A DNA stretch of 64,000 bases from Hemiscyllium ocellatum (Eukaryota), in the NCBI RefSeq assembly GCF_020745735.1, contig NW_026867476.1, positions 434,001-498,000 of the forward strand, written 5' to 3'. Positions 4,440-42,990 of the stretch are shown one piece after another (the stretch's first letter is position 1; every line of letters starts with the position of its first letter). The translations under genes and the position numbers were made by a program. The notes under the pieces were generated by a model. That model ran no database searches, was not told the origin of the DNA, and worked only from the letters and a program-made list of their open reading frames with translations.

Positions 4440-4789
4440 ACGGTCCTCATTTGTGGTCTCTGGTTCATTAGGCTGAATTTCTCCAACAATCCTGAATCTG
4501 ATCGGTGATATTTGCTTCCATCACAGTGCCCTTTCCGCGACAAATGTCTCTGCACAGAACACTGTCATGATTTATGCCAGCCTAGATAGCTCAGTCTGGC
4601 TGATTGAGGCTTTCGGCATCGACCATTCTTTGGCCATCTTCGAGCCAAGTCTGAAGAGCAAGTACTGTACCAGGAAAATTGCATCATGGTTCAACATAGT
4701 GGTTTGTGTCCTGAGCTTTGTCAACCATTTGCACACCAAATTGTCTATTGCACTTGTACATTGTGGATGGAATGTCCTGGTTCTGTGAC
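4440..4789 (+). mobile_element. Possible Tx1-like (L1 clade) ORF2 C-terminal fragment
   Basis: Translation ..VLSFVNHLHTKLSIALVHCGWNVL loosely resembles the Tx1 region at about 54900-55050. Confidence 0.25.
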
Positions 4790-6935: not shown

Positions 6936-7200
6936 ATCCATTGTACTGCTGTTCAGCATATCGCTGGGCTTCCTCATCAATGGGTTATTTCTGCTGCCCG
7001 ACATTTGTTGAGGCATACTTCAGCGACTAGGGCTTCAATAACACAGAGTTCATTTCCAAAGGATGAACAATGTTCAGTAGATATTCAGTTTCCGCAGCAA
7101 TGTCTTCATTTATGCATTATTCCAGAACAAGTTCCCAGACGAGCTCAAGAACTTCTTGGTGTCTCTCTACACATCTCTCACTCGTTGCAAATACTTCTGG
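6936..7200 (+). pseudogene. GPR139-like GPCR pseudogene fragment (TM6-TM7-helix 8)
   Basis: SIVLLFSISLGFL.. followed by sequence aligning to 20510-20760 (..caatgtcttcatttatgc..cagaacaagttcc..). Contains stops and frameshifts; begins exactly at the LTR end. Confidence 0.75.
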
Positions 7201-8685
7201 ATTGTTGTTTTCCTTCCAACAGATGGGCACAGTGAGTAACGCACTCTCTATATAGCTCACTCAAAACTGAATAATTTTGTGCGTTATCACTTCTCTCCTG
7301 GAGATATGAACAGTCAATTTACAGCCCGGATATCCATTGTTGTCAAAGTCATCAGAATATGAGACCACCAGAAGTTGTGTGTTTTTGGGAGAGATGCAAG
7401 TGATCAATTTTTAAGATTTCTAATGATATGAGCCATTTGATTTGATATTCATCTCTTTCTCTCCTTCCCTCTCAGTCTCTATTCTTGTGTGACTCCCTGC
7501 CTTCGTCTCCCTCGTTTAGTCCCAGGACTATTGTGTTCATCGTTTTTGAATCTCAAGCGTTGTCTTTAGCTTTGATGAACAAACCAAATGTGTCCTCAAT
7601 AAAGATCTAGGTAGTTTTCGTTCTGACTGTAGATGGTAGACTCCGTGGCACCGTCCATAAATATCAGACTTAGTTTAAGTGTTTCACAGTATCAGCAGCT
7701 CTAGGCAATTCACCTCCATCCACCACCAACAACAACCCCAAAAAGCACCTGAAGACGTCCTCCACCTTTTCTGCACTACAAAAAAAAATAATTTCATGAT
7801 TCTTTTACTTTACGTTCCGTTTTATGTTACACAAGGCAGTCAGAAATGAGTCTCTGCATGGTCTTTAGACCATTAACTATGTCATACATTTGCCTGATAC
7901 TGACTTTCATTTCTCTCCTGCTGTGTATACTCCTAATCGAAGATGTACACCACCTAATGATCGATTTCGAGAAATTCGATGTGTTAACTTTCCATCACTG
8001 AAATGTTGCATGTTTGCGGCTTATTCTTTATTGTAAACTATATTACCATTGAGAGAAATTTGCCGTCCTCCTTTCTAAGTATATTTTAACTCATGTCTGC
8101 GAGCGTGTAGTATATTCTTGAGCGTTGAACGACACTGGTAAGTCTATTGCTCACTCTTCATGCTCAAGTTGAGCTTAGAACCACGGAACTTCCAGCGTTC
8201 GTATTGCGTGAAAATGGAATGGAAAGGTTGACATTAATTTCTCATGGACATTGCGTGGAGTCGAAAGGATAACGTTGCTTTCTCCCCACAGTTGATGCCA
8301 GATCTGCTGTGCTTTGCCAGCTAGTTTTGCTTTGTGTCAGATCTCCAGCATCCACAGTTCCTTGTTCTATTACTGTGGTACAGGTCATAACAGGAAACCC
8401 AATAAATAATTCTTCTGATGATATCATCTAAAGATTCTGAAGGTAAGACTTTGGTAAAATCCATAAATATTGTTATTTGCACAGTTGGCCCAGTCGACCA
8501 ACTTTAACTATTTCTGTGTTGCATCTGAAACCACAACGCACTTTATCGTGACACCTGAGACACACAATTGAAAATGGTTCCAACATACAAGAGGCATCCC
8601 AGCTCGCTTGTCAATCAGGACCTTTCCTGCTGAAGTTAGTTAAAACAATAGGAAGACTGTCAGAAAATAAAAGAAATTGGACAAT

Positions 8686-9011
8686 CATAGAATCACGACA
8701 GTTTGAAGAATGTCATCCGGCCCATCGAGGATATGCCAAACCTCTGAAGGGCATCCCACAACCCACACACAGTGCTTCTCCATTGAGTGATATATTTCGG
8801 AATAGCTAACGCTATCCACCTAGCCTACACACCCCCAAGCAATGTGGAAAGTTACTTTAGCCAATCCATGAAACATGCACAACTTTGAAATGTGGGAGGA
8901 GTCCAGGCCGCTTGGAAGAAAGCCACACAGACAGTCGTCTATAGATGGAATCAATGGAATCAAGCCCAGGCCGCTGTGGTACTGTGAGGCAGCAGTGCTA
9001 AACACTGAGCC
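8686..9011 (-). mobile_element. V-SINE with tRNA-derived head
   Basis: The reverse complement starts GGCTCAGTGTTTAGCACTGCTGCCTCACAG (A-box like) and ends in a CR1-like tail. Confidence 0.7.
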
Positions 9012-9392
9012 AAAAACCACCCAACTGCAACATCTTTATATGTTCCATTACGTTGGCAACAACGTCTACCTTTAATCAGATTATATTATTGTGAAACTCC
9101 TACATTATCAGAACTTAGCTGGAAAATATTTGTCTCTGTTTTGTATGGGACATCAATTTCAGCCAAACTGTATATTAGGCGGGAGAACATGAATTTGCGT
9201 GCAGTGAGCTGTTAAGATCTGGACTGTATGAGCAAATTTTTCGTCGATAGGAATAATTTTTAAAAAGCCTTTCAATTATAATTGTATAAGCATGTGCATA
9301 GAAGAGGTTAACGGTGCCAAGTCTATATAATATATGATGGATAGTAAATCATTCAGTTATAATTTCAGCCAGTAGACACATACAATTACAGA

Positions 9393-9545
9393 AAATAGTC
9401 ATAGGAGTAGATCATGCAGGTCCTCGAGTCTGTTCCACTATTCAGCGCGGTCCTGACTGGTCATGGAGGTGAATGCAATGCACACATCTCACCCTCCTCC
9501 CATATCCCTTGATCCCTTCAGAGACAAAAATGAATCTCGATCGAC
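9393..9545 (-). mobile_element. CR1 LINE 3' end fragment
   Basis: ..cataggagtag..gtctgttccactattca..catatcccttgatcccttc: typical reversed CR1 3' UTR. Confidence 0.5.
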
Positions 9546-12500
9546 CAAAGGAGAGAGTGTGAGAGATAACGAGTTTATCTATGTGAGAGAAAGGTTGTGA
9601 GATTGTGCATGAAAGAGAGAGAGGAGGCAGCATATGGAGGGCCGAATGGTCGCTGTACTGTTCTTTGCAAATATCTCCTTCCATGCATAGCTATGTCTTT
9701 TAGTGCGGAGAGAATACTGGGAGATGTTGCAATTCCTCGTGTCAGTTTAGGTCTGTATATTTCACCGTTTCTCAAGTTGAGCCGTTGATGTTGAACACTA
9801 ATGGTAATTACCTTTGCTGATTCTTAAGTTTGTGAATTTTAACATTCCAACTCGTGTCAAAAGGCACAAATGGCAGGATGAAAAGTAATATGAAGCATGC
9901 CCACTTGTGCAAAATATAATGTGCCACATGCTGCATCCGGCAATTGTGTGCTTGATCTTCACATGCCTCCAATGTATTTTGAAAATTCAGTGTTCATCAC
10001 GTGTCAACTAAATGGCTTTTCTTGTCCTACTAAAAACTTTCACTAGTGAAAGGCTAACGTGAAATGCCGTTGTAGGATTCAAATATATGCAAGGAGAATA
10101 TTGCTGTCGCTTTCACATTGTAGCCACCATCAACAAATGGACGGTGATAAAGTTCGTCAGAGATAATGCAATGATCCCACCAGCGAAAAAGGCGACTCAA
10201 CCAGGGCTGGCCCCGCTAAAATCCGAAAGATTCTCTGTAATACCGCTCCCTCTCGTTCAACCCAACATCGAGATATTAATACAGTGAGGTTGAATGACGA
10301 TGACAAGTACCTGGCCTTCTGTATTTCGAGAAAGACGTCCCCCGATTTACACATTTTTGGCTGTTAACATAGGAAAAAGAAACAACATTTTATTTTTGTT
10401 ACTTCTCCACTGAATGAGGGCGTCGCTGGTAAGGCCATGTTTATTCTCCATCCCTAACAGAGGTTACTAAAGAGTCAACCATATTGCTGTGGGTCTGGAG
10501 ACACATGTAATCCAGACCAGGTGTGGATGGCAGTTTCTTTCCCAAAACGATATCAGTGTACTGGGTGGGCTTTTAATACAATCGACAATGGATTCGTAAT
10601 CATCACGAGATTCTTAACTCCATCATTTTAAAATTAAATTCAAATTCTACCGTCTGCCAGGGGGTACATACTGTGTGCCCAGACATTTCACTGGATCTCT
10701 ATATTAACAGTCCAGTAGTGAAGCCACGAGGTGGTCTCATCCTCGCCTCCACCAACATTCCCTGATGAGGTTCAATCATGTAATTCAGGAGTGGAATCAG
10801 CGTACCACAGCAGATTTCGGAGTGACTGTGTTATGTCTGAAACTAGCCCTCAATTTAGGATGGAAAAACATGATTCATAAGTAACTGTTCTAGGTTGTAT
10901 ATTGTCCTTCCAAAAGAATGAGAGTCGACTGGAAAATTTGGTCAATAACAACGGCAAATACTGAAGAAAATGGTTCATGACTGACAGCATTCTAATGAGG
11001 AAGAATGATTCAACTAAGGAGTTAAACCAACCATGTTTAAGTCAGAAAGCTAAAGATAAAAAGGAAATTTGAAACGTACATGGAGAGAGGTTAAGAGGTA
11101 AGAAAGAGGATTGGAAAGACATGTTGAAAATACAATGGAAAAGGGAGGTGGACTGCAATGAGCTAACAAACCCCCATCTAATTCTTTAACAAGTTCGTGA
11201 TCTTTCTGTATGAGGTTAATGTGTTGAATATGGAAGGTGGATACAAAGACCAGCCAAACTCATCATGCTGTACGTCTCTCAGATACAGAGGCTCCTTTAA
11301 AACAGCACTTCACTGATGATGAGAGCTCCATGCAGCCTTTACACCCAGCCAATGGTTCCTCAGAGATCGGAACACAATGCAGGAATGCATATATGTCACA
11401 TTTCGATGAATGAAAATGAAGTGAACAGACTCTGTTGTTTGATGAATTAAATCAGAAGAGGAAAGTGGGATCTGTGATCTTAAGGTGAAATAGAAATAAG
11501 AAATCTTCTCATCACGATTTGTTAAAAATGCAACTGAGTAAACACAAGCGTAGTCGTTACTTTTCAGAACTGTAAGCTTCACTCAACACAAAGGCATTAA
11601 AGCTATCGAAGAACCAGGAACTGGAACATACTCGCCAAAGCACACTCACCATGCCGACTTTGAATCTTGTTATGATTCTTGCACAGTAGCCAAGTCAAAA
11701 TCCTGGCTCTCCCTTCTTCGTAAATTTGCGATGTTACCAGATTGGCGTTTGGTAACATCGTGATAATATCACCGGCCACGCAATCCAGTTGCTTACATTT
11801 GGTCTGGAGAGGTCATGGACCCACCTTTACATCTGAAGGTGTTTGATCTCATATTCTCAGACTTTGGACTTGAAGGCTAGTGTCTGGAAATAACTGTGAA
11901 ATTCTCATTTGTATGCTTTTGCCAATGGCATATGCAACTGCACTGAATTCCTTGTTCCGTTACTCAAACCATCTTGCAATGAAGTCAAAAATGTGGACAT
12001 ACCAGATTAGGTTCCATAATCCAAATATATATGAATTCTGATTACGCGGGGTTGCCCATCTGTGAAACAAACAATTCTTCTTACATTTTGCCAAGTTAAT
12101 CTATTTGCGAGTCAATGGTTAAGAGAGTAAGGCAGAAAATTGGATTTTTATAATCATTAATAGTCCCAACGAAAACCAAAGTCCCAATGAACTGAATGAG
12201 CAACCTCTGCTCCTACATCTATTGCACTCTGATGATTATTGATAAAATTTTATTCGATAATCATTGTCATGAAAAGTTAACTCTCTCCAGAGTTCTGCTA
12301 CTGATTTTACATGTGAATGTATCGATTTCATGCCACTCCTGCCCTCTGATAGCAGCCAGTTACGATATTTTTCACTATGTTCAGAAAATGAACAATTTTG
12401 CGTTTGAGAATCATAAAGATATACGATAAGGAAAGACAGCCTTTGGCCCAATTTATCCACGACAACCAGATATCTCAAACGAATCTACTTCCACTTAAGT

Positions 12501-12555
12501 TATCCGTACAGTTGCCTATTATAAACTGTCATGGCTGTTCTTTTCATCTTCGAGT

Positions 12556-12718
12556 AAAAAATGAGGTCTGCAGATGCTGGAGATCACAGCTGCAAATGTG
12601 TTGCTGGTCAAAGCACAGCAGGTTAGGCAGCATCTCAGGAATAGAGAATTCGACGTTTCGAGCATAAGCCCTTCATCAGGAATAAGAGAGAGAGAGCCAA
12701 GCAGGCTGACCCGTCCAG
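12556..12718. mobile_element. Penelope-derived pseudo-LTR repeat
   Basis: aaaaaatgaggtctgcagatgctggagatc..gcagcatc..cgacgtttcgagcataagcccttcatcagg. A related copy is at 63675-63843. Confidence 0.65.
12648..12683 (-). ncRNA. Minimal type I hammerhead ribozyme motif
   Basis: RNA AUUC-CUGAUGA-A-GGGC-UUAU-GCUC-GAA-ACGU-C^GAAU: intact core, stem II GGGC/GCUC, stem I AUUC/GAAU, palindromic ACGU stem III and a GUC cleavage triplet. Confidence 0.65.
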
Positions 12719-13069
12719 GACCTTTCACTTCTTCTATAACAAAAGAGTTATTCGGACTGCGCAGAATGTACTCAGTCCTGAGAGATGCGAAGTCCCAAGT
12801 GTGTCCTTTAATCTGCAGAAGCGATTTCACGAGACTCGAATATGCAGAATCCGGAATATCTCCTCAGTGAGTGCATTTCAAAATAGGATTCTTCTTTTCT
12901 TCAATTGTCACCATTGATCTTTCTGGAACTTAAATGTCCGGAAGTGAACTGCTGACAAAGAATGAAAACTTTAAAAGAAGGATAAAAAAGGTTCATTGCC
13001 ATCCAGACTTACAGCAGATGATTCATCTCACTAAGATTTCCACTGGCAGCTCCGACTCACAAAGCAGTC

Positions 13070-14775
13070 ATCACGATGTGCAATCTGAGGACATGGGAAA
13101 GCGTTTGTTGAATACTTTTTGACAGTACTCACATTGGAAAAGCGCAAGATGAGTGAGAATATGATGATACAGGATACTAGATTAGATGGGTTCGCAGTTG
13201 CCAAAGAGGCGGTTTTAACAATTTTTGAAGATCTTAAAATAGATAAGGCCACTGGGCGAGATGAGATTTATTATCAGATACTGTGGCAAGTCAGGGCGAA
13301 TAAGGTCTAGCCTTTGGCTTTCACCTTTATGTCATCATTGTCAACAGGAGTAGTGCCAGAAGACTGGAGGATATCAAATGTTGTTCCATTGTTTGAGAAG
13401 GAGGGGGTCGGGCCATCGTTGGAAATTATAGCCAGTAAGCTTTATTTTGGATGTGGGTAAGGAGTTGGCAAAGGTTACAAGAGATAGGATTTGTAATCAT
13501 CTGGAAAGCAACAAGTTGACTAACGATAGTCAACGCGGTTATCTGAAGGGTAGGTTGCACCAAACAAACCTTACTAAGTTCTTAAAACGGTGACAAAGAA
13601 GGTGGATGAAGTAAAGCGGTTGATGTGGTGTATATGGACTGAAGTAAGGCGTTTGATAAGATTCCACATGGTAGGCTACTGCACAAGTGCGGACTTTAGG
13701 GACTGATGTTGATTTAGAGATTTGGATCAGGCATTGGCGAGCTGAGAGAAGACAGAAGGTGATAGTTGATGCAAAATATTCATCCTGCAACTCAGTTTCC
13801 AGTGGGGTGCTGCAAGGATCAGTTTTGGGCCAATGCTGTTTGTCATTTTTATAAATGATCTGGATGTGGGCGTAGAAGCATGACAGTAAGGGAGGCAAAG
13901 TTGTGCATAGTGCCGAAGGATATTGTGGTTTGCAGAGAGACACAAGGAAGATGCAGAGTTGGACTGAGAATTGGTAAATGGAAGATAATGCGAAAAGGTG
14001 TGAGGTTGTTCACTTCAGAAGGAGTAACAGGATTGCAAAGCACTGGACTAATAGTAAAACTCTTGGCAGTGCCGATGCACACAGGGGTCTCGGTATCCAG
14101 GTGCATAAATCCATGAAAGTTGTGACCCGGGTTGTTCGCGTTGTTAAGAAGCCATCCGATGTGTTGGCGTTTATTGGTCAGGAAATTGAGTTTCGGGGCC
14201 ACGAGGTCATGATTCAGCTATTCAAGACTCTGGTAAGATCGCACCTGGAACTTTGTGTACAGTTCTGGTCACTGCATTGTAAGAAGGACGTGAAAGCTTT
14301 GGAAAGGGTTCAGAGGAGATTTACTAGGATGTCGCCTGGTATGGAAGGAAGGTCTTACGAGGAAAGCCTGAAGGAACTCAGGCTGATTTCGCTGGAGGCA
14401 AGAAGGTTGAGAGGTGAAATAGTCGAGATGTGTAAGATAATCAGAGGTTAAGATAAGGTGGACAATGAGAGAGCCTTTTTCCTCGGATGGTGAAGGCGAA
14501 AACAAGGTTGCATGGCTTCAAATTGAGGGGTGATAGATTTTGGACAGATGTCAGAAACAGTTTATTTGCATAGAGATTAGAGGGGGCGTGGAACGGCCTG
14601 CCTGCAACAGGACTTAATCTTGCAGATATTAAGGGCATTTACATGGCATTGAACATGCATATGGATAATAATGGAAAGGTGTAGATTTGATGTGCATCAG
14701 ATTAATTTCACGTGTGGATGCAAAATCGAAGGCCGAAAGGCCTGTACTACGCTATAACGTTCTATGTTCTATATT
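13070..14775 (+). mobile_element. CR1 LINE ORF2 (RT) 3' portion, degenerate
   Basis: DKATGRDEIY, NVVPLF, SGV.QGSVLGP, LVRSHLELCVQFWS and ALERVQRRFTRM motifs; ends gttctatgttctatattc. Confidence 0.9.
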
Positions 14776-15304
14776 CTGCATGTTTTTGATTGGTTATTGT
14801 TGTTCAGATGTGTTTTAGAACTCGCTTTCTTGTTAATATGCTGACAAGGTCTGCATGATACTGTGTCGCCGAACCTGTAGTTCACCTTTCTGGAGTTGCA
14901 AATATAGAAGTACGGGGCAGGACTGAGTAACCTGCAATTTGGTTGACGTTGTTCTCGTTGCATGAGTGTTTGATTCTGAGAAACATGTGCCAGGTTATTG
15001 TCTTTCAAACGAGTTCTACAATTCCTTATGTCGCTAAAGGATGCTCTTCAACCTGCGTTTTCGACACCACAACGTCACTGAAGCATTGAAATAGCTTGGG
15101 ACATATCAAAAGGCACAAAATACATTATTTGTATATCATTCATTGAACTAACGACGTTAGCTCATTTTAATAGGATGTTATTAATGATTAAAGCTTTGTC
15201 TTCGAAGGAGTTAGATGATGTCAACGTGAATTCGGGTACCACCGCACATCTGCCCTTCATTTCACAGTTTCATTGATATGCTATCATGTTCAGTGACCCT
15301 CTGA

Positions 15305-15342
15305 CAGTTTTGTACTGGGTCGGCCACGTCTGGGTGTCTGTG
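15305..15342 (-). other. Recombination signal sequence (CACAGAC-22-ACAAAACTG) of the V pseudogene
   Basis: Heptamer 15336-15342, 22-bp spacer, nonamer 15305-15313 on the minus strand. Confidence 0.65.
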
Positions 15343-16196
15343 GGGCTCAGTACACCGTAATAAACCGTGGATTCTGTCAATTTAGTTTTCAACACATTCA
15401 GCTGGGTAGTGGGGTCCACACGATCAAACTCAGAGAAAAAGCAGGATTCTTAAAGGTGTGTCTATGGTCTTGATGTAATGGTTTCTCTTCAGGAGATATT
15501 CCATGATGCAGCTGAAATGCTGCCAGAAGCAGAACAGTTAAGAATCGCTGCTTGGTGTAGCTGTATGATTGTAGAATTACAGGACATCATCTGCCACATT
15601 TAATATGATTGCAGCTGATCATTGGAAGACAGAATCTGCGCGACAAAACAGAGTAATAATCAGAAGTGAGACTAAATTTAAATAGTTACTTTATTATTCT
15701 TATCACCCAGAATCAGCCGGTTCATTTTGAACAATAAACAGAGAAACAATTGGTAGGGAAGTTGAACAAGAATCTTTTTCATACAACACTACGACTGGTA
15801 CCAGCAAGGACTTTGACAAATGAAATAAAAATTCTTTAAAACACTAGTCACCCTTTTAATGAGGTAATTTCCCATTCCCCTCCCAAAGGGACAACGGGAA
15901 TTAGTCGGTTTTTTTAAAAGTTCGGCCTTTGTCAAGTCGCTTCAATCGCCTCAATCCTGTCTGGATTCCCAGTCTAACTCTTTCACTGCTTTTTTTACGA
16001 AGTACAGTTGCCAATTTCTACCAACCTTTGCTCAGTGTTGGGACAAGTTTAGATCCAGATTATTTTCATCTGTGGAGAAGGTATTGCTGTCTCTGTGTTG
16101 CCAGAACTGTTCGAATCAATTTAATTCCTGACATAGAACAGAAGCATAACGTTTCACGAATTGTGAACCTACCGTTCAGAAGAGCTGCAGACGATA
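15343..16196 (-). pseudogene. TCR alpha/delta V pseudogene (paralogue of 46766-47573) with eroded leader at about 16173-16196
   Basis: Minus strand ..CRADSVFQ*..LNVLKTKLTESTVYYGVLSP then the RSS. Stops, indels, Cys104 lost, leader ATG changed to ATA with a deletion. Confidence 0.8.
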
Positions 16197-16864
16197 TGTT
16201 TGCAGAGATATCACGTTGAATATGAGCAGTACTGGCCAAAGCTAAAATTGTTCTCGTCAAGAGTTGGGAAAATCTTGAGTAATTTCCGGGCCTCTGCTCA
16301 GTGGTTCATTATCGGCGAAGACATTGGGTGACAGCCAGGTAACTTGTAGGTGCTTTATTCTTAAATTGCACTACTTTCCTGAGAGCCTCACTTCATGTCA
16401 TGATCTTTGTGAAAAAGGAACACAATGCTGAAAACAGTCACTGGAACTGAAACGTTGATTCAGATACTGCCAAATTGGCTGAGTTTCTCCCGATGTTTCG
16501 GTTTTGTTTCAGATATCTAGTAACTGCAGTTCTTTATAATTTATTTAAAAAACAAACTCAGTTTGTTCATCTGACAACACCGTGATGGACAGAGTCGAAG
16601 CAAAATATCGCCCCATCACGGTTATTATTTCTGTAGGCAACACCAGAAAAGGGAAGCATTTCATGTTCTTCAACTATCACAACTGGAGTTCCCCAGTCAA
16701 CAGAGCTGCTCTCTGACGATGACAGCTCCCTGCAGCTGATGTGGAAGGACTGTGGGTCTGAGCGATTTGGAATAAAATAATTAGTTAAATACAAGTAATT
16801 TTTAATGAATGTGATGGTAGAATCAAATGTGTTTTCTCTGCATTTGCTGGCAAGTGCCATTGGT

Positions 16865-17135
16865 TGGCATGGCAATTCACTGGTTGCAAGGCTGTCGCAC
16901 TGCACTGGGGACATAGGTTCTTTTCCACTTTCGGGTGAACATCTTCATGGTGTGTACACATTTTTGCTGCTTTCCAGGTATCCGCACCCAGTTCAATCAT
17001 GTTCAGGCTATGTCGATTAGCTGTGGGCAAAGTGTGGTTACTAGAATTCGATAGAATAGGGTTCATGCTTTTCAGTGGGTCAGTTTGGTTTCAATGGGCT
17101 GCATGGCCTACTACCACATTGTCGACATTCTACAT
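16865..17135 (+). mobile_element. Old degenerate V-SINE
   Basis: Collinear similarity to the SINE consensus, ending ..gggtcagtttggtttcaatgggctgcatggcctactaccacattg. Confidence 0.5.
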
Positions 17136-18113
17136 TGTCAAAAGCTGGTTTTGTTTAACTTCACCTTTCATCATCACATATATAACTTATGCACCTATAT
17201 CAGATGCAGTGTGTCAAAAAGATGGCTCACCAACCTATTGCCATGCTATAGACTATGTTTGCACAAACGTAAACAATTAATCGAGGTGTTGCTGATAGTA
17301 TTGGTGTGAATGCTGGTGAGTCAAAATGACGTTGTCGGATGGGTCAGGCCCTATCATAATGGCGACTGCAAGGGATCATATCTTATTTTTTTCTCTATCA
17401 TATTATCTCTATTTTTGTTCCTTTGTAACGGAAGTGCCTCTAATTACCAGTGCTTTTGATACGATATTCCAAATCAAAATACAAGTTGCTGCTTCACCTG
17501 TTGATGCATTTAGCAAATATAGCAAACCCCAGCCCACACTTCTAGCTTTCTAAACCCTGAACCAGAAGTCGAAAGGTTGAAGACCTGTCTGCACTTCTCG
17601 ATGAGCAGGACAAACGAATCGTTTTGCGTATTTCCATCGTCAAAAATGTGCATCTGATATCAACGTTACTTCAAATAGTTGAGTGATTTCGTCACATTAA
17701 GGCATAAAACATGACAACCCTGATGGAAAGAACAAGCAAATGAACCAATCTGACTTGTCACATCAAAAAAGTACATGAAAAGTGAAAATGGCAGAAGCAT
17801 CAATTTTAGATTTAATATTGTGGCGATAGAAACGAAAGGGAGACAGAAAACCATGGTTTGTGAGGGTGAGCGCATCAGACGTTTATGGAGCCAATTCCTC
17901 CATGAATTTGATGGCAGCAGCTGCATTGCTAATTGTCAAAATGGAAGGCATCAAAACCGGGATTGATTTGCTGTTGGCAGAACTGTAAATGAGCTGAATG
18001 ATCCAACTTAATTGTTTCTCTAGAGACACCAAGATGGAATATATGTGCGACTCTGTGCATTTTTCAGAGCTCAGTTCTTTCCAATTGCTTTACTTTTTGG
18101 AGGAAAAAAAACA

Positions 18114-18183
18114 ATGCACGGGCCAGCGAAAGGACTCTTCTTTGGAATTGCTTACCCCATTGTCGCGGCTATTGGTGTCCCTG
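18114..18183 (+). CDS. GPR139/GPR142-like class A GPCR, exon 1 (N-terminus and TM1)
   Basis: ATG..CCT G|GTAAAT gives MHGPAKGLFFGIAYPIVAAIGVP, phase 1. Homologous exons precede the other GPCR copies. Confidence 0.8.
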
Positions 18184-19359
18184 GTAAATAATAGATGACA
18201 AAAAGATAATGTTATTTTCTGTTCTATGAATCTTCTGGCACATTGCTTTTCAGGTCCGGGCTGAATTTATTTGCAGAACTCGACATTTTCTGAGATTAAG
18301 ATAGATCAACTCGGCAGCAATATCTTGAGCTGCCACTTTATGTACACCTTTATAATATGTAGCTCAATTTGTTGCATGCAGTGTCACAAGTATGTCATGT
18401 ATTTGCGTGCTGGAATATGAATTTTAACGTATGACATTGCGTGAACGTCAGTCTGTTATTTACTGAATATTGGTTTCTGCAATGATGTTGCACACAAATC
18501 AAAAAACCACTTAGTGACTTGTGAGTGATAGTGTGTTATGGTGCAAGCAGTTCGATTTTCGTACACACATCATTTGGCGTCATTATAAGTAATTCATATC
18601 ATACAATGACCACGTTAAGGGCATTCTAACTTCGAAAAATACGTTCGGTTATTATAAAAATCAATGGTGAGACTTTTGTGAAATAAATAATAGTTATGCT
18701 GCAGTGAGTTCCCATTCAATAGTCAATATTTTAAATGTGATTTTAAATAAGACCTGGACACATTTGAAAAGGGCGAGGAGACAGAAAATTGCTATAATCT
18801 GTGACGAAAATTGCCTTATGCTGATAGGTTTTGTAAATTTTCATTCTGTTTTTGTGTGAATACACATATGTTCACGATAATGCAATATGGCTGTCTCAAT
18901 TTCCGTTTAGCACTGGACAAGATGGAGTTGTACATGTTCTTTCAGGCCATCGCATTATGTCAAGATTGATTGATTCGCAGGAGCGTGGACATTACGAAAT
19001 TCTGTTGAAAGATGGAAGGAATAGTAGTGTGAGCAACAATATGTTTATCAAAGAGATAGATTATTAGAAGCACTCTTAAGAGTAGAAATACCCTTCGAGG
19101 GAGAGATTTCCAGGGATTAGATGCTCGACAACTATAGATTGAGTGGGATAGATGACATGATTCGGGGATGCACAACAGAGCAAAATTTGAGGCACGTGGT
19201 GATGACAGACGTTTATGAATTCCAAATAGATGCAAGTGGCAATTCCTGACCTTATAAACATTAAGATGAGATGAATGAAAGTGAGGTGTTGCCAGGCGGA
19301 GACCTATTGAACGGCAATATGCTTGGGACAAGGGATGAACTGCATACTATGCGAATGTG

Positions 19360-19600
19360 AGGGACCAGGGTTCCATTCCATCCTTGTCTGTGTGGGTTTT
19401 TCATATGTTTCCTGTGTATGCAAAGGTGCCTGCTAACTTGGTCAGGATTCCTCCCATAGTACAAGATATCCAGATAAGATGAATTGGCCAAGCTAAATTG
19501 TGCCATTGTGCACAGGTGATATGCAGTTACATGGGCTATCTCTGATAAATACATGAATACGGGGACATAGTGGGGATAGATGGGATGCCCTTCGGAAATT
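19360..19600 (+). mobile_element. Degenerate V-SINE in the GPCR intron
   Basis: gggaccagggttccattcc..gattcctcccatagtacaagat..gaattggccaagctaaattg. Confidence 0.5.
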
Positions 19601-19888
19601 AAACATTCAAACCGCAAATGACTTCTTTCCACACATTAGGAATTCTCTTTTTCTGCAATCTTTGAATGGATAGGTGAATATTACCAGAAGAAAGAAATTG
19701 TGGTGACACAGATTTCAGTAGCCCCTGTATTGACAAACGATTATTTCAGCAGTGACACTATACTTTTAGAAGAGTCATTATCTCAGAGTGATGAATGAAT
19801 GTTTGAGATGATAGCAATAACAGGAAGGACGAGACAATGGCCATTTGAAATTAGCATAGTAACAACTCTCTCTTTTGACCACTTGCAG

Positions 19889-20817
19889 CCAACTTGGTGA
19901 CAATCATAATCCTATCCCGAGGACGATGCGGACTCTCACGTTGTGTCACCAACTACCTGATGGCGATAGCTTTCGCTGATTTCCTTGTTATATTCACCGG
20001 GTGCATTCTGAACAGGATCGGTCGCATTTATCTTAGGTACACAATCCTATCTGCTTTTCCAGTGTGTGCGTTTAGTGCAGTTTTGGTCTACATCAGCCGT
20101 GATGGATCAGTCTGGCTGACAGTAGCCTTCACCATTGATCGTTTTGTGGCCATCGCCTGCCCGAGTCTGAGTACCAGATACTGCACTGAGAAAACTGCAT
20201 TGCTCGTCATAGGCGTGATCTGCTCCTTGTTCTGCAGCAAGAACATCCCTCTGTACTTTGTCACTCAACCCTTGGTTATACTGGATGGGATGCCTTGGTT
20301 CTGTGGCATCAAGCCGATGTTCTACACTTCACCTGCCTGGCAGGCCTACCACTACCTTGACCGTGTCTTGACTCCACTCCTTCCGTTCTTTCTCATTCTC
20401 CTGCTTAACGCCCTCACTGTTCGGCATATTTTAGTGGTCAATGCGGCACGCAGGAGGCTCCGTGGCTCTGTGAATGGTGAAGATCACGAGATGGCCAAAC
20501 GCAAGAGATCTATAGTTCTGCTGTACGCCATCTCCATCAGCTTTCTACTCCTGTGGGGCACATATGTCGGAAGATTCCTCTACATTCAGATTACAGGGAA
20601 GGACTACTTTGGTGGCCTAGATTTCAATAACCCACAGTACATTCTCTCAGAGATGACAAATATGCTCCAGTTACTCAGTTCGTGCAACAATGTCTTCATC
20701 TATGCGATATCTCAGAATAAGTTCCGAGAGGAAATGAAGAAGGTGCTAATGTGTCCTCTTCTCTTAATCACCAGTTGTTTCAAATGTCGAAAACCGCAAC
20801 AGAAAATCACCACATAA
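19889..20817 (+). CDS. GPR139/GPR142-like class A GPCR, exon 2 (intact; spliced ORF 999 nt, 332 aa)
   Basis: After the ttgcag acceptor: (A)NLVTIIILSRGRCGLS..LMAIAFADFLV..WLTVAFTIDRFVAIAC..TPLLPFFLILLLNALT..SIVLLYAIS..LSSCNNVFIY. Seven hydrophobic helices and a DRF motif; the GxP/AN exon junction resembles GPR139. Confidence 0.9.
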
Positions 20818-22434: not shown

Positions 22435-22530
22435 TTGATTTCTTCGGAATTTCCTCATGAAACACTCATATCAGTTCAAACTGTTGAAAAGAAAAACTCA
22501 CAGACTCTGCAGTATATTGCTTCTCCCAGA
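22435..22530 (+). pseudogene. Possible V-segment 3' relic
   Basis: ..TCTTCGGAATTT..CTCACAGACTCTGCAGTATATTGC gives SSEF..LTDSAVY(-)C, resembling FR3 of the 15343/46766 V family. No RSS seen. Confidence 0.3.
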
Positions 22531-23024
22531 GACGAGCAGACAGGTAAGCTTGAAATGTTTCACAATTCGTTTGTTGGTGATAACACAAAAGTTCAATTAT
22601 TAGAAATATTTTCTTTTAATGGACTAACGCTGCTCGTTTAAGGAATGAATACAGAACTTATTGCGTGCCTTTTGAGATGGCAAAATGTGATTTACTGTTC
22701 AACAAATGAGGCGCTGCAGAAAATATAATAAACACTCTTGGAATAGTAAAGTATTTCGAGGAAGCATGGAGCAACAACACTTATTTGAGAGACATCGAAA
22801 TGTCACATGATTCTAACAATGAAACATTGGAAGAAACTGAATCAGTTCAAACACATAACAATGGCATGGGGAAGCCAGTAGAGGGCGGCTTTACATTACT
22901 TTAAACAGAAAATGGACTGACAGACATGAGGATGGAGAGAGAGATTCTGAGCCTCCGATTCATCAGGTTTTAATCGTTCATTCAACCGTCCCTCCCGGAC
23001 AAAGTTTGTCCCATTGCAGGAATA

Positions 23025-23100
23025 GATGGACACATACACAAACATACACGCACACACACGCACACACACACATCGAGACACACACATACATCGAGACGCA
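23025..23100. repeat. Imperfect (CA)n microsatellite
   Basis: cacatacacaaacatacacgcacacacacgcacacacacacatcgagacacacacatac. Confidence 0.7.
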
Positions 23101-25949
23101 ATTCCACGTGAGCAGCAATATTTGATGACTTCAACAACAAGAGAGACAGAAAAAGAGGAAGAGGTTTTGACCCTTTCCTTTGAATAATCCTCCAAAACAA
23201 CAGACAGTCGATTGCACCCAGATTCAGATATACAGATATGCACAAATATGGAAACACACATTAATGCACACTAAATACAAGCACTCATGCTTACAAACAT
23301 GGCCAGAGTGTCAGGAGCAAAGGCATCGAAATATGCAGGAAGAGAAACAAAAGCACAAATAAATGGACGCGTGCGCACATGCACATTCACTATCTTGGTC
23401 TCTCTGACAGTCCATTTCTCGAATTTTACTTTTGCACTTTTGAAAACGTCTACATTCGGAGAGAAGAGTGCAAAATTGCCTTTCTCTCTGGGCTGGAGTA
23501 CCGAGTGCTGAGCTCACATTCTCCCAATTATTTGTCCATAATTTAGGAATGATATGAAGAAACATTACTTCCCACAAAGGATTGTAAAAGTTAGGAATTC
23601 TAAATGGAATTTGTAATCAATCAGCAAAACTATTCCACCACAATCACAAGATAGAAACAGACATCCTTACTCTTGGTGTGACATTGATAAACGGTAACAG
23701 CTGAGAAAGTCATTGATTTGCTCATCGGTTAGTCTACAGTTTGTTCTGTCTTTCTTCATTATTCTACTGACCTTAAAATGAACGAGAGAGCATAAAGGAA
23801 GAGAAGAAGCAAAAGTATTCACATAACAGAGGAAAGAAAATCTTGGCCAAATAGCGATTATATTTCAAAACCAAAAAGCAAGTTCCATCAATGTGGAGCA
23901 TTTCCGAACGACACGATTGGGAGCGCCCACTAATAACATATTTAGTTCAATCACAGGACAGGTATGCAATAATAATTGCATCGGACAATTAGATGTGGAC
24001 ATGAAGTTAACAGTGAGGTGACCGACTTCAATTTTCAAAACGCTCTGAAACTTTCAATGTTAATATGGATCATATATAATGTGCCTTCCCAGAACTATAC
24101 CCAGTGCTCACTTTATGATATAACCAGGGATTTGCACAGCAGCAGCCAACTTTACTTTCCATCAACACGTTGTATACGGTGGAAATATTTTGAAAGTCTA
24201 TTGATATAAATGAAGACGAAATTGATTCGAAAAATAGCTGAGAAAGCACGTTAAATTTCAAATCAACTTCCTAAATAAATACACAGTTGCACGGTACAGA
24301 GCAGAACTTTTGCCTCAACCTTTTAATAAACTGGTTGTGACCATTTGCCAGCAATTGATATCCACCGAAAATCTTCCTATTCATATCCCCAACCAAATGA
24401 CTTTCAAATGTCAGAATTGTACTCGACGCTGCCAATTTCTCTGGCAGCTTACGAATTTCAACCACCACCCAACAGCCCTCTTTATTACGTTTTTTATTAT
24501 TTCAGTATTTTATTATTGCAGTGTCCGAGATTGGACTGCAAGCCAAGATATCATTGATGGAAAATGTGTTAATAAATACAAGCTCTGCGAATGCCCTGAA
24601 GTTACGTGGAATCAGGTTCAAAAACGTACCCTTTTATTTTGCAATATCTCCTGTCCATGTCCAGGCCGTCGCAATAGGATCATGAGCAGTGCAATTCCGA
24701 TTTGATCATGCACCATCGGTGTTGTGAAAGATGCATGGCCAACGTGGCGGCACCTGCTGCAGGATGATGGGTACTTGTTCTCCGTGAAATGTGAAAGAAA
24801 GCAGAATGTGGGAAAGACATTGGAGGTGGTGGCGGGAGCGGGGAGCTTTCATGAACACTGCTTACAGACCTCAAAACCCGAATCAGGCACTCATCGTGCC
24901 GCACTGACAATGAACTAGCCTGAAGCTGTGGTGCCCCGTGTCTCAAACACAAGCCACGACTATAGGTTGACATTTTTGTTGGTGGGGTGCAACTGCCAAC
25001 AGCGTGCATGCGCTTTAATCCTGATTGTGGAGTGGCAAGCCATGAATATCTCTGCAAAATGGACAAGGGTGGGGTTTATTAAATCTTTTTGCAGAGGATT
25101 TACGGAAATTTGAAACCAAGATGAATACTGCAGGAAGGCTGGAAGTGAGAAGAATTTCATGTCTGGCAGAATCTTTGTAGAGATAAGCAGATTTTCCAGT
25201 AATCCATACGGGAGGCTGAACGTGAAATGTTAATTAGCATTTACTCTCCACAGATGCTGCTGGACGTGTTAGGTTTCTCCTTCATTTCAGATCTCCAGCA
25301 TTTATTGAAGAGAAATGTTGATCATTTCTGAATTTCCATTCTGAACTGGTATTGAAGGACTTTATTGCTTTTTCGTGCATTGTATTTAAAGCAGAGACTC
25401 GGTGGTGGAGAAACTGAACTCATCTGTCACATCAAGATCTGACAGAGTCGATTAATGCATTATGTTCTGAGCACCATTTGTTTGGAAGTAGGAAGATAAA
25501 TGTTCATTTCTTCCGTCAGTCGGCAAAGGGTGCAGCTTAGAATAAGATCCAGGAAGTGGAAACCCAACTTCAATGGATATGAGTGGATAGGAGCCAGATA
25601 ACTTGCAATCTCGTTGTCCTGCTTTCAAGCAAAAATTGTTCTGACACTTTCGAGGAATATTCCCATGAATGGTGCATTCAGTGGTCGCAACGCCAAAGCA
25701 ACGTTGATGACAAAACAGAGAAAGAAATTAAGATTCTCACGGACAAAGCACTTGTGACAAACACGAGGGTGATAGTTAACTGATGACCAGGATAAATTTG
25801 GACTGTTCTGGGATAATTGAATAAGTAAATGTTCAAAGCAGAACCACAGTTTTGAAAGATGGCAGAAGTTAACTTAGCTTTGAATCAAAATCTCTTCAAT
25901 AGTCATGTCACTAATAAATGTGCAATTAGACGAACATGCATGAGTGTTG

Positions 25950-37285: not shown

Positions 37286-39743
37286 ATGCACGAGCCAGTC
37301 ATTGCCCCATTCTTTGTCGTTTTCTACTCAATCCTCGCTGCTATCGGTGCCCCTGATAAGTCACTGATGTTCGAGAAAATCGATTGCCTATTCGTGTATT
37401 TCCAGATGTTTATTCCTTATCTTTCCAGGGTTCAGTAGAATATTTCCAAACTGCAACTCTTTAATTTTAAAGCAGTTCAACAAGTCTCCAGACCGTATAA
37501 TACATCATGAAATAATATCTGCAGCAAACTTACAGAAAAATGGGCTATGAGAACTGAGAACTGCGTTGAATCACAATGCATAAACATTAAACAGTAATAT
37601 TGTCACAAATTGCGTTCAAATCCAATTCAATAAACTGGAATTTGGTCCATTGTATGATGATTGGTTTAACACAGTGTGGTAAAATGCCTCTCTGCACAGC
37701 TTTCCTTACAGTATCTAAATATGAATTACTTTGTAGTTGTACTTTAGAAGACATTTTGTAATATAAACCTACATTCACAGATTAAACGAATGTACAGCAT
37801 GCGCTGAGCAGGGGTGTAATAAATTGTCGAGCTCCCAAAGGACAACAGAATCGTTAATGTGGTCTTGGGACTTAATTGAAGTTTAGTCTCAAAGACGTCA
37901 ATAGCGATGCAATATTTTTGTACTTTGTTAGTTTGCCTTTCTGCTGTGAATTCTCTCAAATTTCAAATCATTATATTTTAAATAATTTACCAAAAAGATA
38001 TTGTTCCTCAATTATAAGAACGTGCAGTTCCACCTCGTCTCAAGTTATCTCACTGCATACAGCAAACACCAGAACAATGTGGCAGACCAATTTAGTTTTG
38101 AGGAATATGAAATATTGACAAACGGTTTGACCAAAGGAACGTCTGAAAGAAGGGAGCAAAATCCAAGCTACTCAGGTGGTAATTCCAACAATTTGGGTTT
38201 TAGTCATTGAATCTATAACCACCATACTTTGGAATATTAAATTGAAGGATGTACAGGACATAGAATCAAACTTAACATGATATTTCAGACTGTTGTATGA
38301 TGCCGCAATGGATTTCACTAGGGTCGGGAACATCTGAACATTTGAAGGATGAGGTTGCAAAGGGTGAGACATCTCTGTAAGGATCCAACGTCGGTCAACA
38401 TTTATGGATTAAAGGCTGACCCGTATTTGATATGAATATGTTCATGTCAGCCGCATTATTTTTGTTATTGCAAATTGAACAAGTAGCTACTTGGCATTAA
38501 CTCAGTGACTGGAGTGCGATTTTGTTTTCCTGGACTGACCACATTGACAGATGATGCGGTGTTGATATGTAAGACTGGGGTGGAGAAAGTCAGACGTGAC
38601 AGTAGATCTGGTTATTGTCCAATGAGTTTGTTTAAAATAAGATTCCAGACTGCTGTTCCATTGTAAATTGCATCACAATATGTTTAATGCTGCACTTCAT
38701 GTCTAGTAATTGTCAATGTTTTCAAAAATAAGGTGGACAGTGGAAGTGCCAAGGTGATAGTTGAAGGTAGTTCTGTGTAATATTTCACGAAGATACAAAG
38801 TTTCGACTGAGTTCAGTAATGTCTCATTTGATTTTTCACAGCCAACTTGCTGGCATTCATAATTCTATTGCGAGGACGGTGTGGTCTCTCAAGGTGTATC
38901 ACCTCCTACCTGGTGGCGATCGCAGTGAGTGATTTCCTTGTCATTACTACTGCAGTCATCCTCAATCGAATCAGCCGCATCTATTTTCGGAAAAGTCTCT
39001 TCTCCACCACTCCTGCGTGCACTCTCAGTGTCGTATTGGTCAATGCCACTCTGGATTGCTCGATGTGGCTGACAGTGGCCTTTACCATTGATCGCTTTGC
39101 AGCCATCTGCTATCAGAGACAGAAGACCAGATTCAGCAATGAGAAAACCGCATTACTGGTTATAGGAATGATCTGTGTTCTGTGTTGCGTTAAGACCATC
39201 CCTTTGTACTTTGCATTCCAGCCCTTGTTCATTTTGTATGGGGTATCATCGTTTTGCAACATCAAAGTCAGCTTCTATACCTGGCCAGTCTGACAAGCAT
39301 ATGATTGGCTGTTTCGTATCATGACACCTTTTCACCGATTCTTTGTCATTCTGCTGCTAAACATCCTTACCATAAGACAAATCATAGCGGCCAACAGAGC
39401 TCGCAGGAGGCTCTGGGGTGCCGAAAATCGACAAGATCCAGAAATGGCCAACCGCCAAAGGTCCATTGTCTTGCTGTTTGCCATTTCTCTCAGTTTCCTC
39501 CTCATGTGGTCCCCTGTTGTTGGACATTTTATCTATGTGCGGCTGAAAGCTAAGAGTGATTTTGATGGACTGGATTTCAGGAACCCGAAGTACATATTTG
39601 AAGAAAGCACCAACATACTCCAGTTACTTAGTTCCTGCAACAACGACTTCATCTATACGGTCTCACAGAACTTGTTTCGAAAGCAGATGAAGAAAGTTCC
39701 GATTTACCCCTTCGTCATTCTCGCCAGATCATTTAAACGATGA
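37286..39743 (+). pseudogene. GPR139-like GPCR pseudogene (exon 1 37286-37355, exon 2 38842-39743)
   Basis: Exon 1 MHEPVIAPFFVVFYSILAAIGAP with its donor changed GT>AT. Exon 2 is open apart from a single TGA (W>stop) at 39291-39293. TIDRFAAIC and SSCNNDFIY motifs. Confidence 0.88.
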
Positions 39744-41579
39744 ATGATTAGAAAACAGGTCATCTTGTTTCTTTCCGAACAGAGTGACCGAGCGTTCACT
39801 TCTACCATTTACATTCGATAAAGAAATCTGATGAAAAGAAGCCCCAGTCTTAAAGGGACATAAGGACTATACTCCTGCTGTACAGATACCTGAAGCATAG
39901 CCTAAAAGAATGCAGAAATATTGGAAATTATTTCCTCCTGGACATGAAGCGAATTTATGATTTGTATCCACCCACACTTCCTCCAACTCTCACTGGTCTC
40001 GTACAATTCATATTTGTTTATTCATGTATTTCCCCATTGTTTTGCTGTTGATATCATTTTCCAATCTCTTCATTCCTTCCAGTTTTCCTTCAGCACTGTC
40101 GCCCTCTTTGCCATTATTTCATTTCTGTGAGCTGTCATATCGCCCCGTCCATCTAGTTCACGATGTTCCACAGAGTAACGTGATCTTCAAGAAGACCCAT
40201 AACCCAATTTTTGTGTTTGAACTGTGTCTTCAGGGATGTGTGTTCTTTTCATTGTTGAGTCTGCAGGATTTACATTGATTCTCCTGTTGAACCCCTCGGA
40301 GAATTGAACATTATAACAACATCATTAGGTTCTTCCCTAGTTTCTACATCAGAACTTCATTTTTCTGCACATGAATTCAAATAAACAAGAATACATGCTT
40401 AAACAAAATCAAATTTCCAATTTCATGGCATCAATAATTTTGCAATAACTATGATTGAGACGATCATTACATAAATTGGCACGCTCTATGTCTCAGATTT
40501 TTGAGGTACTCCAACGAATAACATTCGGCCATCCTGAGAATAATGCATTCCTTTCTGCAATTTGAGTTCTCCTTATTAATTCATCACCACAACTTAACAT
40601 CAATCTCGTATTCTCTAACATATTTACCGACTTCCTGGATGGAATGTTACCAAAAATGTTCAAAATAATGAAAACTCATCACATCTGCTGGTTGTTCCTT
40701 ATCGGTGCTCCAATTAGCATCCACAAAACGAATTCCAGAGAGTTTGCGAAATATTCTTCCCCTTTTGTGAATCTGTATTAACTCATCTCAAACATATCAT
40801 TGTTTCAAAATGTCTATTTATCGTCTCCTTCATCATATGACCTGGTAATTCCTTATAATTGACATTCAACAGTATTCTGGTCCCTGGTTTCTGATCCCGT
40901 CCTTCTTAAATAGTTGGATTAGTATCCTTTTTTTATAAACCTCAGCAACTTTTCCACAACTTCTCGAATTTCCAACGATAATCATCAATGCACTCATTGT
41001 CTATCGAGCCACCTCCTACAAGACTCTGGAATGGACACCATTTGGTTAAGGAACTTATCAACCCTAAATGTAAGAAGTTTTCTGTTCTCAGCATTCAAAG
41101 GATTTTCATGCCCTGGACTCCTCCTCTGATATCATCCGTTATTGGTAAACAGAGTCTTGAAATTTTTGAAATTTATTTATAGCCGAATATTCAGACAGCA
41201 AAACTGGCGAAGGAAAATCATTCAATAATTTCACAACAAAAGATAGAAACAATTGGGGAAAATGCAGAGAAGGACTGAGATGTCCTACAAATTAGACCTA
41301 AGCTCACATTTTGAAATAGGAACTCTTTGATGGTGTAATCAAAACACGTGGAAAGGGGCTTCAGAATTTGCAGGTTGCTGTTCTCGTTTCACGCGTGTGC
41401 AATTGTGCAATATTCCAATGTTACATAGCAGGCATGACACCGGACCAGACACGAAGTTACACGTTCGAATGTAATTGACACACTCCAGACTCTGAAATTG
41501 CATAAATTAGAGACCTTTTTGTTTATGCCGCGGAGCTCAAGCGTGGAGTTTTGAAATTTCGATTAGTTTACAACAAATG

Positions 41580-42990
41580 ATGCATGGCCCAGCGAGTGTC
41601 TCGTTCAATGCCCTGTATTATTTAGCACTTGCTACTACTGGTGTCCCTTGGTCGGTAACACATTCTAACGATTTGCTTTGAAGTTCAACCAAGTAGTTTC
41701 TTTTACATTTCACGATCGTCTTTGTTTTCTGATAGTCACCGCTGAAGGAAACAGCCCAGATCACTATGTATATCCAAAATATTGAGATGGACTAAATTTC
41801 ACGCGTTTGCAATGCACAGCAACATTATACGCAAACTGTTATTTTGAGCAATTAAAGAACAATTAGTTATTAGATTATTGGTTTGTGAATTTTAATGTGT
41901 GAAATTGCCTGAATAATATTCAGATTAACTGCACAAAATTAAATTTTATTACACTGCTGGCAAAGTCAAGCAGCTGTTTTTGCTGTTGTCTGGAATAATG
42001 CACTATCATTGCGTTCAATAATTTTATACACAGTTGACATGATGATCCCGAAGAAAATTATTGCACATGCGTCATTATTTTAAAGATTAAAAGTGTATCT
42101 AGTGATTACTCAAATCAGTTCAAAGGTTCTTGGCACTTTCGCCAGCCAACCTGCTGGCGATCTTTTTACTATAACGAGGATCGTGCGTACTCTCTGGGTG
42201 CACCAACTTTTACTTGGTGGGGATAGCAGTGAGCGATTTTCTTGTGATCACCACTGGGTACTTCCTGACTCAGGTCGGCGGCATTTAATTCTGACACAGC
42301 GCCAAGTCCGCGACTACTGCCTGGGCAGTCAGCACCATGATAATCTAAGCCAGTCAGAATGGCTCCATCTGGCTGATTGGTATTCACCATCGGCCGTTTC
42401 GCGACTCTGAAGACCAGGTACTGCACCGAGAAAACTGCATCACTGTTCATTGGAGTGGTTTTCGCCCTGAGCTGCATCATGAATCTGCTTCAGACGACGT
42501 CAACTAGCCCTTGTACATTGTGGACTGGGTGTTCCGGTTCTGTGACTTCAGATACTCGTACTGTAATTCATCTGCATGGAAGTCCTATTACTAGCTGAAT
42601 CATATCTTCACGCCTTTTCTGCCCTTCCTTCTTATTCTGCTGCTCAATGCCGTGACTGTCAGATACATCTTGGGAGCCAGCAGTGTCTGAAGGAAGCTCC
42701 AGGTCCAGCATACTGCTCTTCACCATCTCGCTCAGCTTCCTCCTTCTAAGGGTCACCTTTTTTGTCAGGCGCTCCTTCTACGTGTAGTTTAAAGGTGAGG
42801 AATACTTCCGCGGCTTGGATTTCACTGACCCACAGTTTATTCTCCAAGAAACGACGAACATGATGCAGACACTAAGTTCCTGAAAAAACGTTTTCATTAA
42901 TGCAATATCCCAGAACAAGTGTTGAGATGAAATGAAGATGGTGTTATTGTCGCTCTTCACATCTCTCGCTGGGTGCAAAATAATTTTGTC
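41580..42990 (+). pseudogene. GPR139-like GPCR pseudogene (exon 1 about 41580-41650, exon 2 about 42146-42990)
   Basis: Exon 1 MHGPASVSFNALYYLALATTGVP with a 1-nt insertion before the donor. Exon 2 ANLL..VFTIGRFATL..TRYCTEKTASL..PFLPFLLILLLNAVT, with many frameshifts and deletions. Confidence 0.8.

Follow-up and report, generated by a model that had tools for sequence, protein, structure and literature searches.

GPR139-related receptor genes among the V segments of a shark T-cell receptor array

Gene families of other kinds have been described inside mammalian T-cell receptor (TCR) loci. Olfactory-receptor genes are interspersed with the variable (V) segments of TRA, the TRAV segments, at the TRA/TRD locus of opossum, human and mouse (PMC2275272). 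Trypsinogen genes lie in the mammalian TRB locus, where the extent of their duplication varies between species while synteny is conserved (PMC2685407). Here we describe a comparable arrangement in a shark, in a stretch of 64,000 nucleotides from Hemiscyllium ocellatum (NCBI RefSeq assembly GCF_020745735.1, contig NW_026867476.1, positions 434,001 to 498,000 of the forward strand). This whole stretch is called the window in the following, and positions refer to it. It is V-array DNA of the TRA/TRD type, has no N runs, and contains four copies, named A to D in their order along the DNA, of a G-protein coupled receptor (GPCR) gene related to GPR139. The explanation which we consider probable is that these receptor genes have resided beside the V segments for a long time and are passengers of the duplication of the array.

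The parallel to the olfactory-receptor genes of mammalian TRA/TRD had already been drawn in an initial annotation of the window, with the reservation that the GPCR family is a different one, and it is apt with this reservation (PMC2275272). In both cases multigene class-A GPCRs lie between the V segments of TRA/TRD and are kept across species, in the sharks across three orectolobiforms. The shark receptors, however, are related to GPR139 and have two coding exons, whereas the coding regions of olfactory receptors are single-exon. Furthermore, the shark genes are embedded far inside the array, where they flank NAR-TCR cassettes on either side and recur together with them, whereas the mammalian olfactory-receptor genes are found at the 5' edge. 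The trypsinogen genes of TRB are similar in that a non-immune family is located between V segments and the diversity, joining and constant (D-J-C) elements and, by its position, is lost on V-DJ joining. They differ in being proteases with a pancreatic function in another TCR locus, while the shark genes encode receptors. As to the proteins themselves, GPR139 and GPR142 are vertebrate orphan or aromatic-amino-acid class-A receptors. GPR139 is the best structure match of the shark receptor, the DR at the end of transmembrane helix (TM) 3 and the N-x-x-x-Y of TM7 align, and NCBI names the relatives 'probable GPR139'. However, the similarity is distant, galanin receptor 1 fits nearly as well, and there are hundreds of paralogues per lineage instead of one orthologue. 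In a literature search we found no paper describing an expansion of GPR139-related genes in sharks or GPCRs in a shark TCR locus.

Four receptor copies between V segments

The initial annotation had proposed four same-strand copies of a two-exon GPCR of the rhodopsin family. All four are real: they were found on the plus strand by tblastn with the intact exon 2 of copy B, which served as the query of the homology searches, and Pfam 7tm_1 was recognized in each of them. Apart from the query itself (19894-20814), tblastn detected C at 38847-39737 (59.6% amino-acid identity, E 3e-111), D at 42151-42979 in two frames (E 3e-37) and A as fragments at 4489-4795 and 6931-7191. In the six-frame list of open reading frames (ORFs), one long GPCR ORF was identified with Pfam at 19894-20817 and two neighbouring ones at 38847-39293 and 39321-39743. 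The positions proposed for the first exons (18114, 37286 and 41580) were exact, as MHGPAKGLFFGIAYPIVAAIGVP begins at 18114 and related 23-residue peptides are found at the other two sites. To score lesions, each copy was aligned with its closest annotated relative in a frameshift-aware manner.

Copy B is the intact one. Its exon 1 (18114..18183, plus strand) comprises 23 codons and one further nucleotide, is followed by the donor GTAAAT at 18184, and aligns at 69.6% with residues 1-23 of the annotated H. ocellatum relative P0020. Exon 2 (19889..20817, plus strand) shows no lesion; it is intact and, by its sequence, likely functional. The donor (CCTG/GTAAAT at 18183/18184) and the acceptor (CAG/CC at 19889) define a phase-1 intron which rebuilds an Ala codon, and the spliced model has 332 codons. 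The Logan proteins P0100 and P0103 begin within exon 2 and are uninformative on splicing. With 64.7 bits B clearly exceeds the Pfam PF00001 cut-off of 30.5 bits; the first piece of C also lies above it (40.2 bits), the second piece below (22.3 bits). The near-invariant positions of the family (at least 95% conserved, n=60) give a similar picture: B keeps 58 and C 53, compared to a median of 59 and a 5th percentile of 55 in annotated genes. The short N-terminus noted earlier was confirmed, since only about 7 residues (MHGPAKG) precede the hydrophobic run of TM1 in B. The class-A hallmarks TIDRF (end of TM3) and NNVFIY (TM7) of B align with TIDRY and INFFLY of GPR139.

The copies at 37286 (C) and 41580 (D) had been classified as pseudogenes, and stops, lost or disrupted donors and frameshifts bear this out. 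In C, the donor of exon 1 (37286..37355, plus strand) is changed from GT to AT (CCTG/ATAAGT), while a paralogue in the duplicated locus L003, described below, retains GTAAGT. Exon 2 of C (38842..39743, plus strand) is a pseudogene of young age, in which a stop at 39291 interrupts the frame in place of a conserved Trp, and has 93.9% amino-acid identity to the annotated protein P0107. D is much more decayed. Donor and phase of its exon 1 (41580..41654, plus strand) are disrupted, and its exon 2 (42146..42985, plus strand), a pseudogene of old age, has accumulated 8 stops and 3 frameshifts and is still 71% identical in amino acids to P0020 in the frameshift-aware alignment.

Copy A was known from the initial annotation only as a fragment at 6936. 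This fragment is a genuine piece of A, namely the 3' part of exon 2 (6931..7191, plus strand; tblastn, 37-45% amino-acid identity), whose downstream flank 7009-7698 matches 42796-43516 behind D. The copy is larger than assumed, however. A frameshifted pseudogene piece with the 5' part of exon 2 lies at 4447..4850 (plus strand; tblastn segments in three frames against P0107, P0020 and the Rhincodon protein P0026). Still further upstream, 3204..3599 (plus strand) is upstream flank or intron of A, homologous to the D intron at 41776-42170 (self-blastn, 66.8% over 398 nucleotides). Between the two parts of exon 2, roughly 2 kb of DNA have been inserted, among them a pol fragment of a long terminal repeat (LTR) retrotransposon (4834..6064, plus strand), which has 70% nucleotide identity to 62383-63659, a region with RVT_1 and RNase H domains.

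The 70%-identical kin of this insert is itself a decayed LTR-retrotransposon pol (62256-63685), broken into three ORFs. A spread of the receptor copies by retroposition was considered as well and rejected, because the intron interrupts B, C and D at the same codon.

The order of elements along the window is A, psiV15, B, NAR V, supporting V, C, D, V46, V50 and V52. A Pfam scan of the six-frame ORFs yielded five V-set ORFs. The NAR-type V of the NAR-TCR cassette (30508..31400, plus strand) has signals at 31354 and 31377 which resemble recombination signal sequences (RSSs; RSS scan). The supporting TCR-delta V (34223..34641, plus strand) has a canonical 23-RSS, CACAGTG-23-ACAAAAACC, at 34603. 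The other three are on the minus strand: V46, a V of TRA/TRD type (46727..47112) with the near-canonical 23-RSS CACAGAG-23-ACAAAAACT at 46765-46727; V50 (50116..50554, V-set at 50155-50554) with a canonical 23-RSS, heptamer at 50154; and its tandem paralogue V52 (52836..53265, V-set at 52875-53265, 67% amino-acid identity), also with a canonical 23-RSS, heptamer at 52874. In addition, a dead V of the V46 type, psiV15, lies at approximately 15230..15450 (minus strand; tblastn, 56% to V46), in which a conserved Cys has become Gly and the RSS has decayed to CACAGAC. Thus non-TCR genes, the GPCR copies, sit between V segments bearing RSSs, canonical ones at 34603, 50154 and 52874. They occur on both sides of the NAR-TCR cassette as previously stated. 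The alternation of GPCR copies with V segments that had also been claimed holds only in part, as C and D are adjacent to each other, and so are V46, V50 and V52.

Duplication of the array in blocks

The proposal that the receptor genes duplicate together with V units finds support at three levels of age. The oldest is a pair within the window. Self-blastn aligned copy A and its surroundings with D (3204-3599 with 41776-42170, 4490-4836 with 42263-42595, 7009-7698 with 42796-43516) and the psiV15 block with the V46 block (15109-16337 with 46533-47716). All these matches have about 65-67% nucleotide identity, and order and orientation are preserved. The intermediate one is locus L003 on H. ocellatum scaffold JAJGRY010000101.1 (1.981-2.003 Mb, reversed), which is collinear with window 27499-49714 at 92-95% and contains NAR V, supporting V, C, D and V46. 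The most recent one is locus L001 on the same scaffold (1.036-1.057 Mb), collinear with window 9677-34201 at 90-98% and containing psiV15, B and the NAR-TCR cassette. L001 and L003 are 0.94 Mb apart in opposite orientation and are 93% identical over the cassette. The duplicated blocks therefore exceed 20 kb, and in this window the receptors were copied along with the NAR-TCR cassette.

If the window and the scaffold belonged to different assemblies, one of the two loci could be allelic to the window, but not both, and the pair within the window is independent of this. An assembly artefact was rejected, since the same order occurs at two sites in GCA_020745735.1 and V segments adjoin GPCR genes in two other species as well. 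The state of copy D is informative here. Its counterpart in L003 is likewise riddled with stops. As D is dead in the window as well as in L003, it was dead before the block was copied, and the receptors thus look like passengers.

Within these blocks the NAR V behaved differently from its surroundings. Compared to L001 and L003, the NAR V (window 30694-30966) has an amino-acid identity of only 79-82%, a synonymous divergence (dS) of 0.18-0.21 and a ratio of non-synonymous to synonymous divergence (dN/dS) of 0.46-0.65. Its surroundings in these blocks have diverged far less, the identity being 96% for the supporting V (dS 0.06) and 100% for V46 (over 79 codons). The NAR V may thus be of older origin, may have been converted by sequences of other cassettes, or may be under diversifying pressure at its tip. 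A further irregularity concerns L001, which is otherwise 97-98% identical there but lacks about 1.5 kb of the window (23082-24584). The missing piece adjoins a TG-rich simple repeat (its ORFs at 22896-23261 read CVCVCV), and to the right of it the identity drops from 97-98% to 90-93%, suggesting a breakpoint of recombination or conversion between repeat units. Outside the blocks, the GC-richest part of the window (53955-56000, GC content 0.47) contains long ORFs which overlap and occupy both strands (296 and 184 amino acids), with no Pfam match; it is probably a repeat element.

Receptor lineages and their V neighbours in other species

With a word-index search of proteins, 883 matches at E<=1e-10 were obtained. 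The 120 of these that were listed all stem from sharks and rays, individual species being represented by many of them, and the majority bear the name 'probable G-protein coupled receptor 139'. The best match among those listed is 98.6% identical and is encoded on H. ocellatum scaffold JAJGRY010000101.1. The closest solved structure to B is GPR139 (PDB 7vug/9m42, E 4.8e-10, full-length), followed with a small margin by GALR1, the galanin receptor 1 (E 7.4e-7). In the stretch corresponding to LWAPR of GPR139, B has LWGTY, i. e. the Trp is kept and the Arg is replaced by Tyr, both being putative ligand contacts in GPR139. The designation 'GPR139-like' of the initial annotation is acceptable as to the nearest named relative only and does not denote an orthologue. 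There is no one-to-one relationship between vertebrate GPR139 and these genes, given 883 proteins with hundreds of paralogues and the distribution of the window copies over three shark-only lineages. By sequence comparison, the receptor is a member of a large cartilaginous-fish expansion that is distant kin of GPR139. The family shares a trait of chemosensory-type receptors in being large, clustered and subject to birth and death, with three of the four window copies being pseudogenes.

A quick maximum-likelihood tree was calculated from 82 relatives and the four window copies, with X placed at the breaks of the dead copies. A and D grouped with P0020 (H. ocellatum) and P0026 (Rhincodon) with a support of 100. 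They are on long branches which make their exact placement less sure, but their best identities (65% and 52%) indicate the same relatives. B grouped only with P0001 (support 98-100), and the stem of this pair (0.27) is the longest in that part of the tree. C grouped with P0107 and P0063, including a gene of Chiloscyllium punctatum (support 98-100). The view that the window holds four copies of one gene did not survive this comparison; the tree resolves three old lineages, A/D, B and C, which by their placement are older than the split of the sampled orectolobiform species. The dN/dS values are 0.13-0.19 between old paralogues and 0.36 between C and its L003 copy. The family is under long-term purifying selection.

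The annotated C-type paralogue in L003 (P0107, L003 11528-12418) deserves a remark of its own. It has 302 amino acids compared to about 323 in its relatives, owing to a stop near the C-terminus about 20 residues early, and it, too, may be turning into a pseudogene.

Members of the family are spread over many contigs. Among the best 120 of the 883 matches, the 17 from H. ocellatum lie on 10 contigs, 5 of them on the TCR scaffold. In the same set, 10 of 11 Rhincodon matches are on one chromosome of 11.7 Mb and 5 of 6 Stegostoma matches on one of 16.4 Mb. Neither random dispersal nor incongruent trees were observed, and the subfamily closest to B is concentrated on one small chromosome each in Rhincodon and Stegostoma.

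The neighbourhood of the receptor genes was inspected at four further loci, L002, L004, L005 and L006, which were chosen solely because they hold a GPCR relative. In the zebra shark Stegostoma (L002), an open V50-like segment with an RSS-like signal follows 5.5 kb downstream and a dead V46-like one 8 kb downstream. In Rhincodon (L004), a V46-like segment with CACAGAG-23-AGAAAAACT is located 18.6 kb upstream of exon 2. No V segment was detected in 25 kb of the skate Leucoraja (L005) or in 31 kb of the cow shark Heptranchias (L006). Gene tables of lamniform and carcharhiniform loci (Cetorhinus, Carcharodon, S. torazame and S. canicula) listed no neighbour within 10 kb, but are uninformative since the V segments of L002 and L004 are likewise uncalled in such tables. 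Given the rarity of V segments in a genome, two V-adjacent loci in two orectolobiform samples are, in our estimation rather than by a computed statistic, far above chance. The neighbourhood of GPCR genes and V segments is real and conserved at least within Orectolobiformes.

The V46-type segments share a peculiarity of their RSS. The variant heptamer CACAGAG with a 23-bp spacer is found in the window (46727-46765, minus strand) as well as in the whale shark locus L004 (5261-5299). Its presence in both indicates that the odd heptamer is conserved and not a fresh mutation.

Probable passengers of the array and alternative explanations

A probable course of events is the following. A subfamily of this very large GPR139-related family has long been resident in the TRA/TRD V/NAR-TCR array of orectolobiform sharks. 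The array grows by repeated block duplication, partly with inversion; units in both orientations are found on scaffold JAJGRY010000101.1. Each block carries V segments, NAR-TCR cassettes and the intervening GPCR genes, alive or dead. The GPCR copies then undergo birth-and-death evolution, in which B has stayed intact, C is a recent loss and the loss of A and D is old. Finally, judging from the layout, V(D)J joining in T cells would delete or invert receptor genes as by-catch. Deletion or inversion depending on the orientation of the RSSs is an established mechanism of V(D)J joining. The RSS of the supporting V faces C, D and the downstream Vs, whereas those of V46, V50 and V52 face the opposite way, and joining is therefore expected to delete some copies and invert others in individual T cells. 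This loss or inversion is probably without consequence for the T cell, because B, if it works at all, most likely does so in non-lymphoid (sensory or neural) tissue.

One may ask whether even B has a function. All four copies including B could be functionless relics, B being intact only because its last duplication was recent. Between B and its L001 copy (98.6% identical) there are 6 non-synonymous and 2 synonymous changes, which is a neutral ratio; no protein identical to B was found in the protein database; and the long stem that B shares with P0001 would also fit. Yet a 332-codon frame is open over two exons with canonical splice sites, 58 of the 60 near-invariant positions are retained (as in a typical annotated gene and unlike the dead C), and exon 2 differs from L001 by 0.87% compared to about 2% for the surrounding block. 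We therefore regard this explanation as unlikely. A second question is whether the location of the receptors reflects a common regulatory logic, i. e. whether they are chemoreceptors chosen stochastically, one per cell, by the same chromatin or long-range choice machinery as the V array, and have converged on the arrangement of the mammalian olfactory-receptor genes among TRAV. The size of the family (883 matches), its birth-and-death evolution with many pseudogenes, the very short N-terminus and the independent mammalian parallel (PMC2275272) speak for this. Family members in skate and cow shark are far from any V segment, however, and the proneness of both gene classes to duplication in blocks accounts for the pattern, so that no common mechanism is needed. 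A common choice machinery appears very improbable.

The most far-reaching proposal, made in the initial annotation, is a functional coupling in which the GPCRs are expressed in the T lineage and their deletion or inversion by RAG alters receptor dosage or expression in each clone according to the V used. It draws on the fact that the genes are flanked by V segments whose RSSs are usable, so that joining should delete or invert some of these genes, and on the persistence of this neighbourhood in three orectolobiform sharks. On the other hand, all copies but B are dead, D had died before it was copied, one family locus each in skate and cow shark has no V segments nearby, and the analogous olfactory-receptor and trypsinogen genes are also lost on rearrangement. 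We know of no described effect of this loss on T cells for the genes lodged in TRA and TRB. Such a coupling thus appears extremely unlikely. Equally slight is the chance that the GPCRs are more than lodgers in that thymocytes or T cells transcribe B-type genes, or that these genes use the same chromatin-choice machinery as the array. If this were true, deletion or inversion on V(D)J joining would give each T-cell clone a receptor dosage depending on its V and thus produce a clonal mosaic, which would be a parallel to, and perhaps an explanation for, the repeated lodging of chemoreceptor-type GPCRs in the TRA V arrays of sharks and mammals.

Several observations nevertheless weigh against the receptors being mere passengers of the array, or against the long duration of their residence there. 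Skate and cow shark are represented by one locus each, so the age of the association is poorly bounded. The excess of non-synonymous changes between B and its L001 copy would be unlikely at an omega of 0.15 (P about 0.02), although 8 changes are too few to decide; as a hint from this small number, B may be relaxed or diversifying rather than simply conserved. The concentration of the subfamily on the TCR chromosome and its persistence in three orectolobiforms could reflect more than a chance neighbourhood, and a lymphoid role for B is possible.

The locus adds an apparently independent second example to the mammalian olfactory receptors among TRAV: in both, a multigene GPCR family is interwoven with a TCR alpha/delta V array. 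As this is the second such case, V arrays of antigen receptors may act as duplication-prone nurseries which amplify the genes residing in them. The finding would be relevant to T-cell biology only if the receptors were expressed in lymphocytes, and nothing in our analysis suggests so. For the receptor family itself, the copies in the TCR array are dated, block-by-block examples of birth and death, and the shark expansion could be a sensory repertoire that has gone unrecognized, in animals whose classical olfactory receptors are few.

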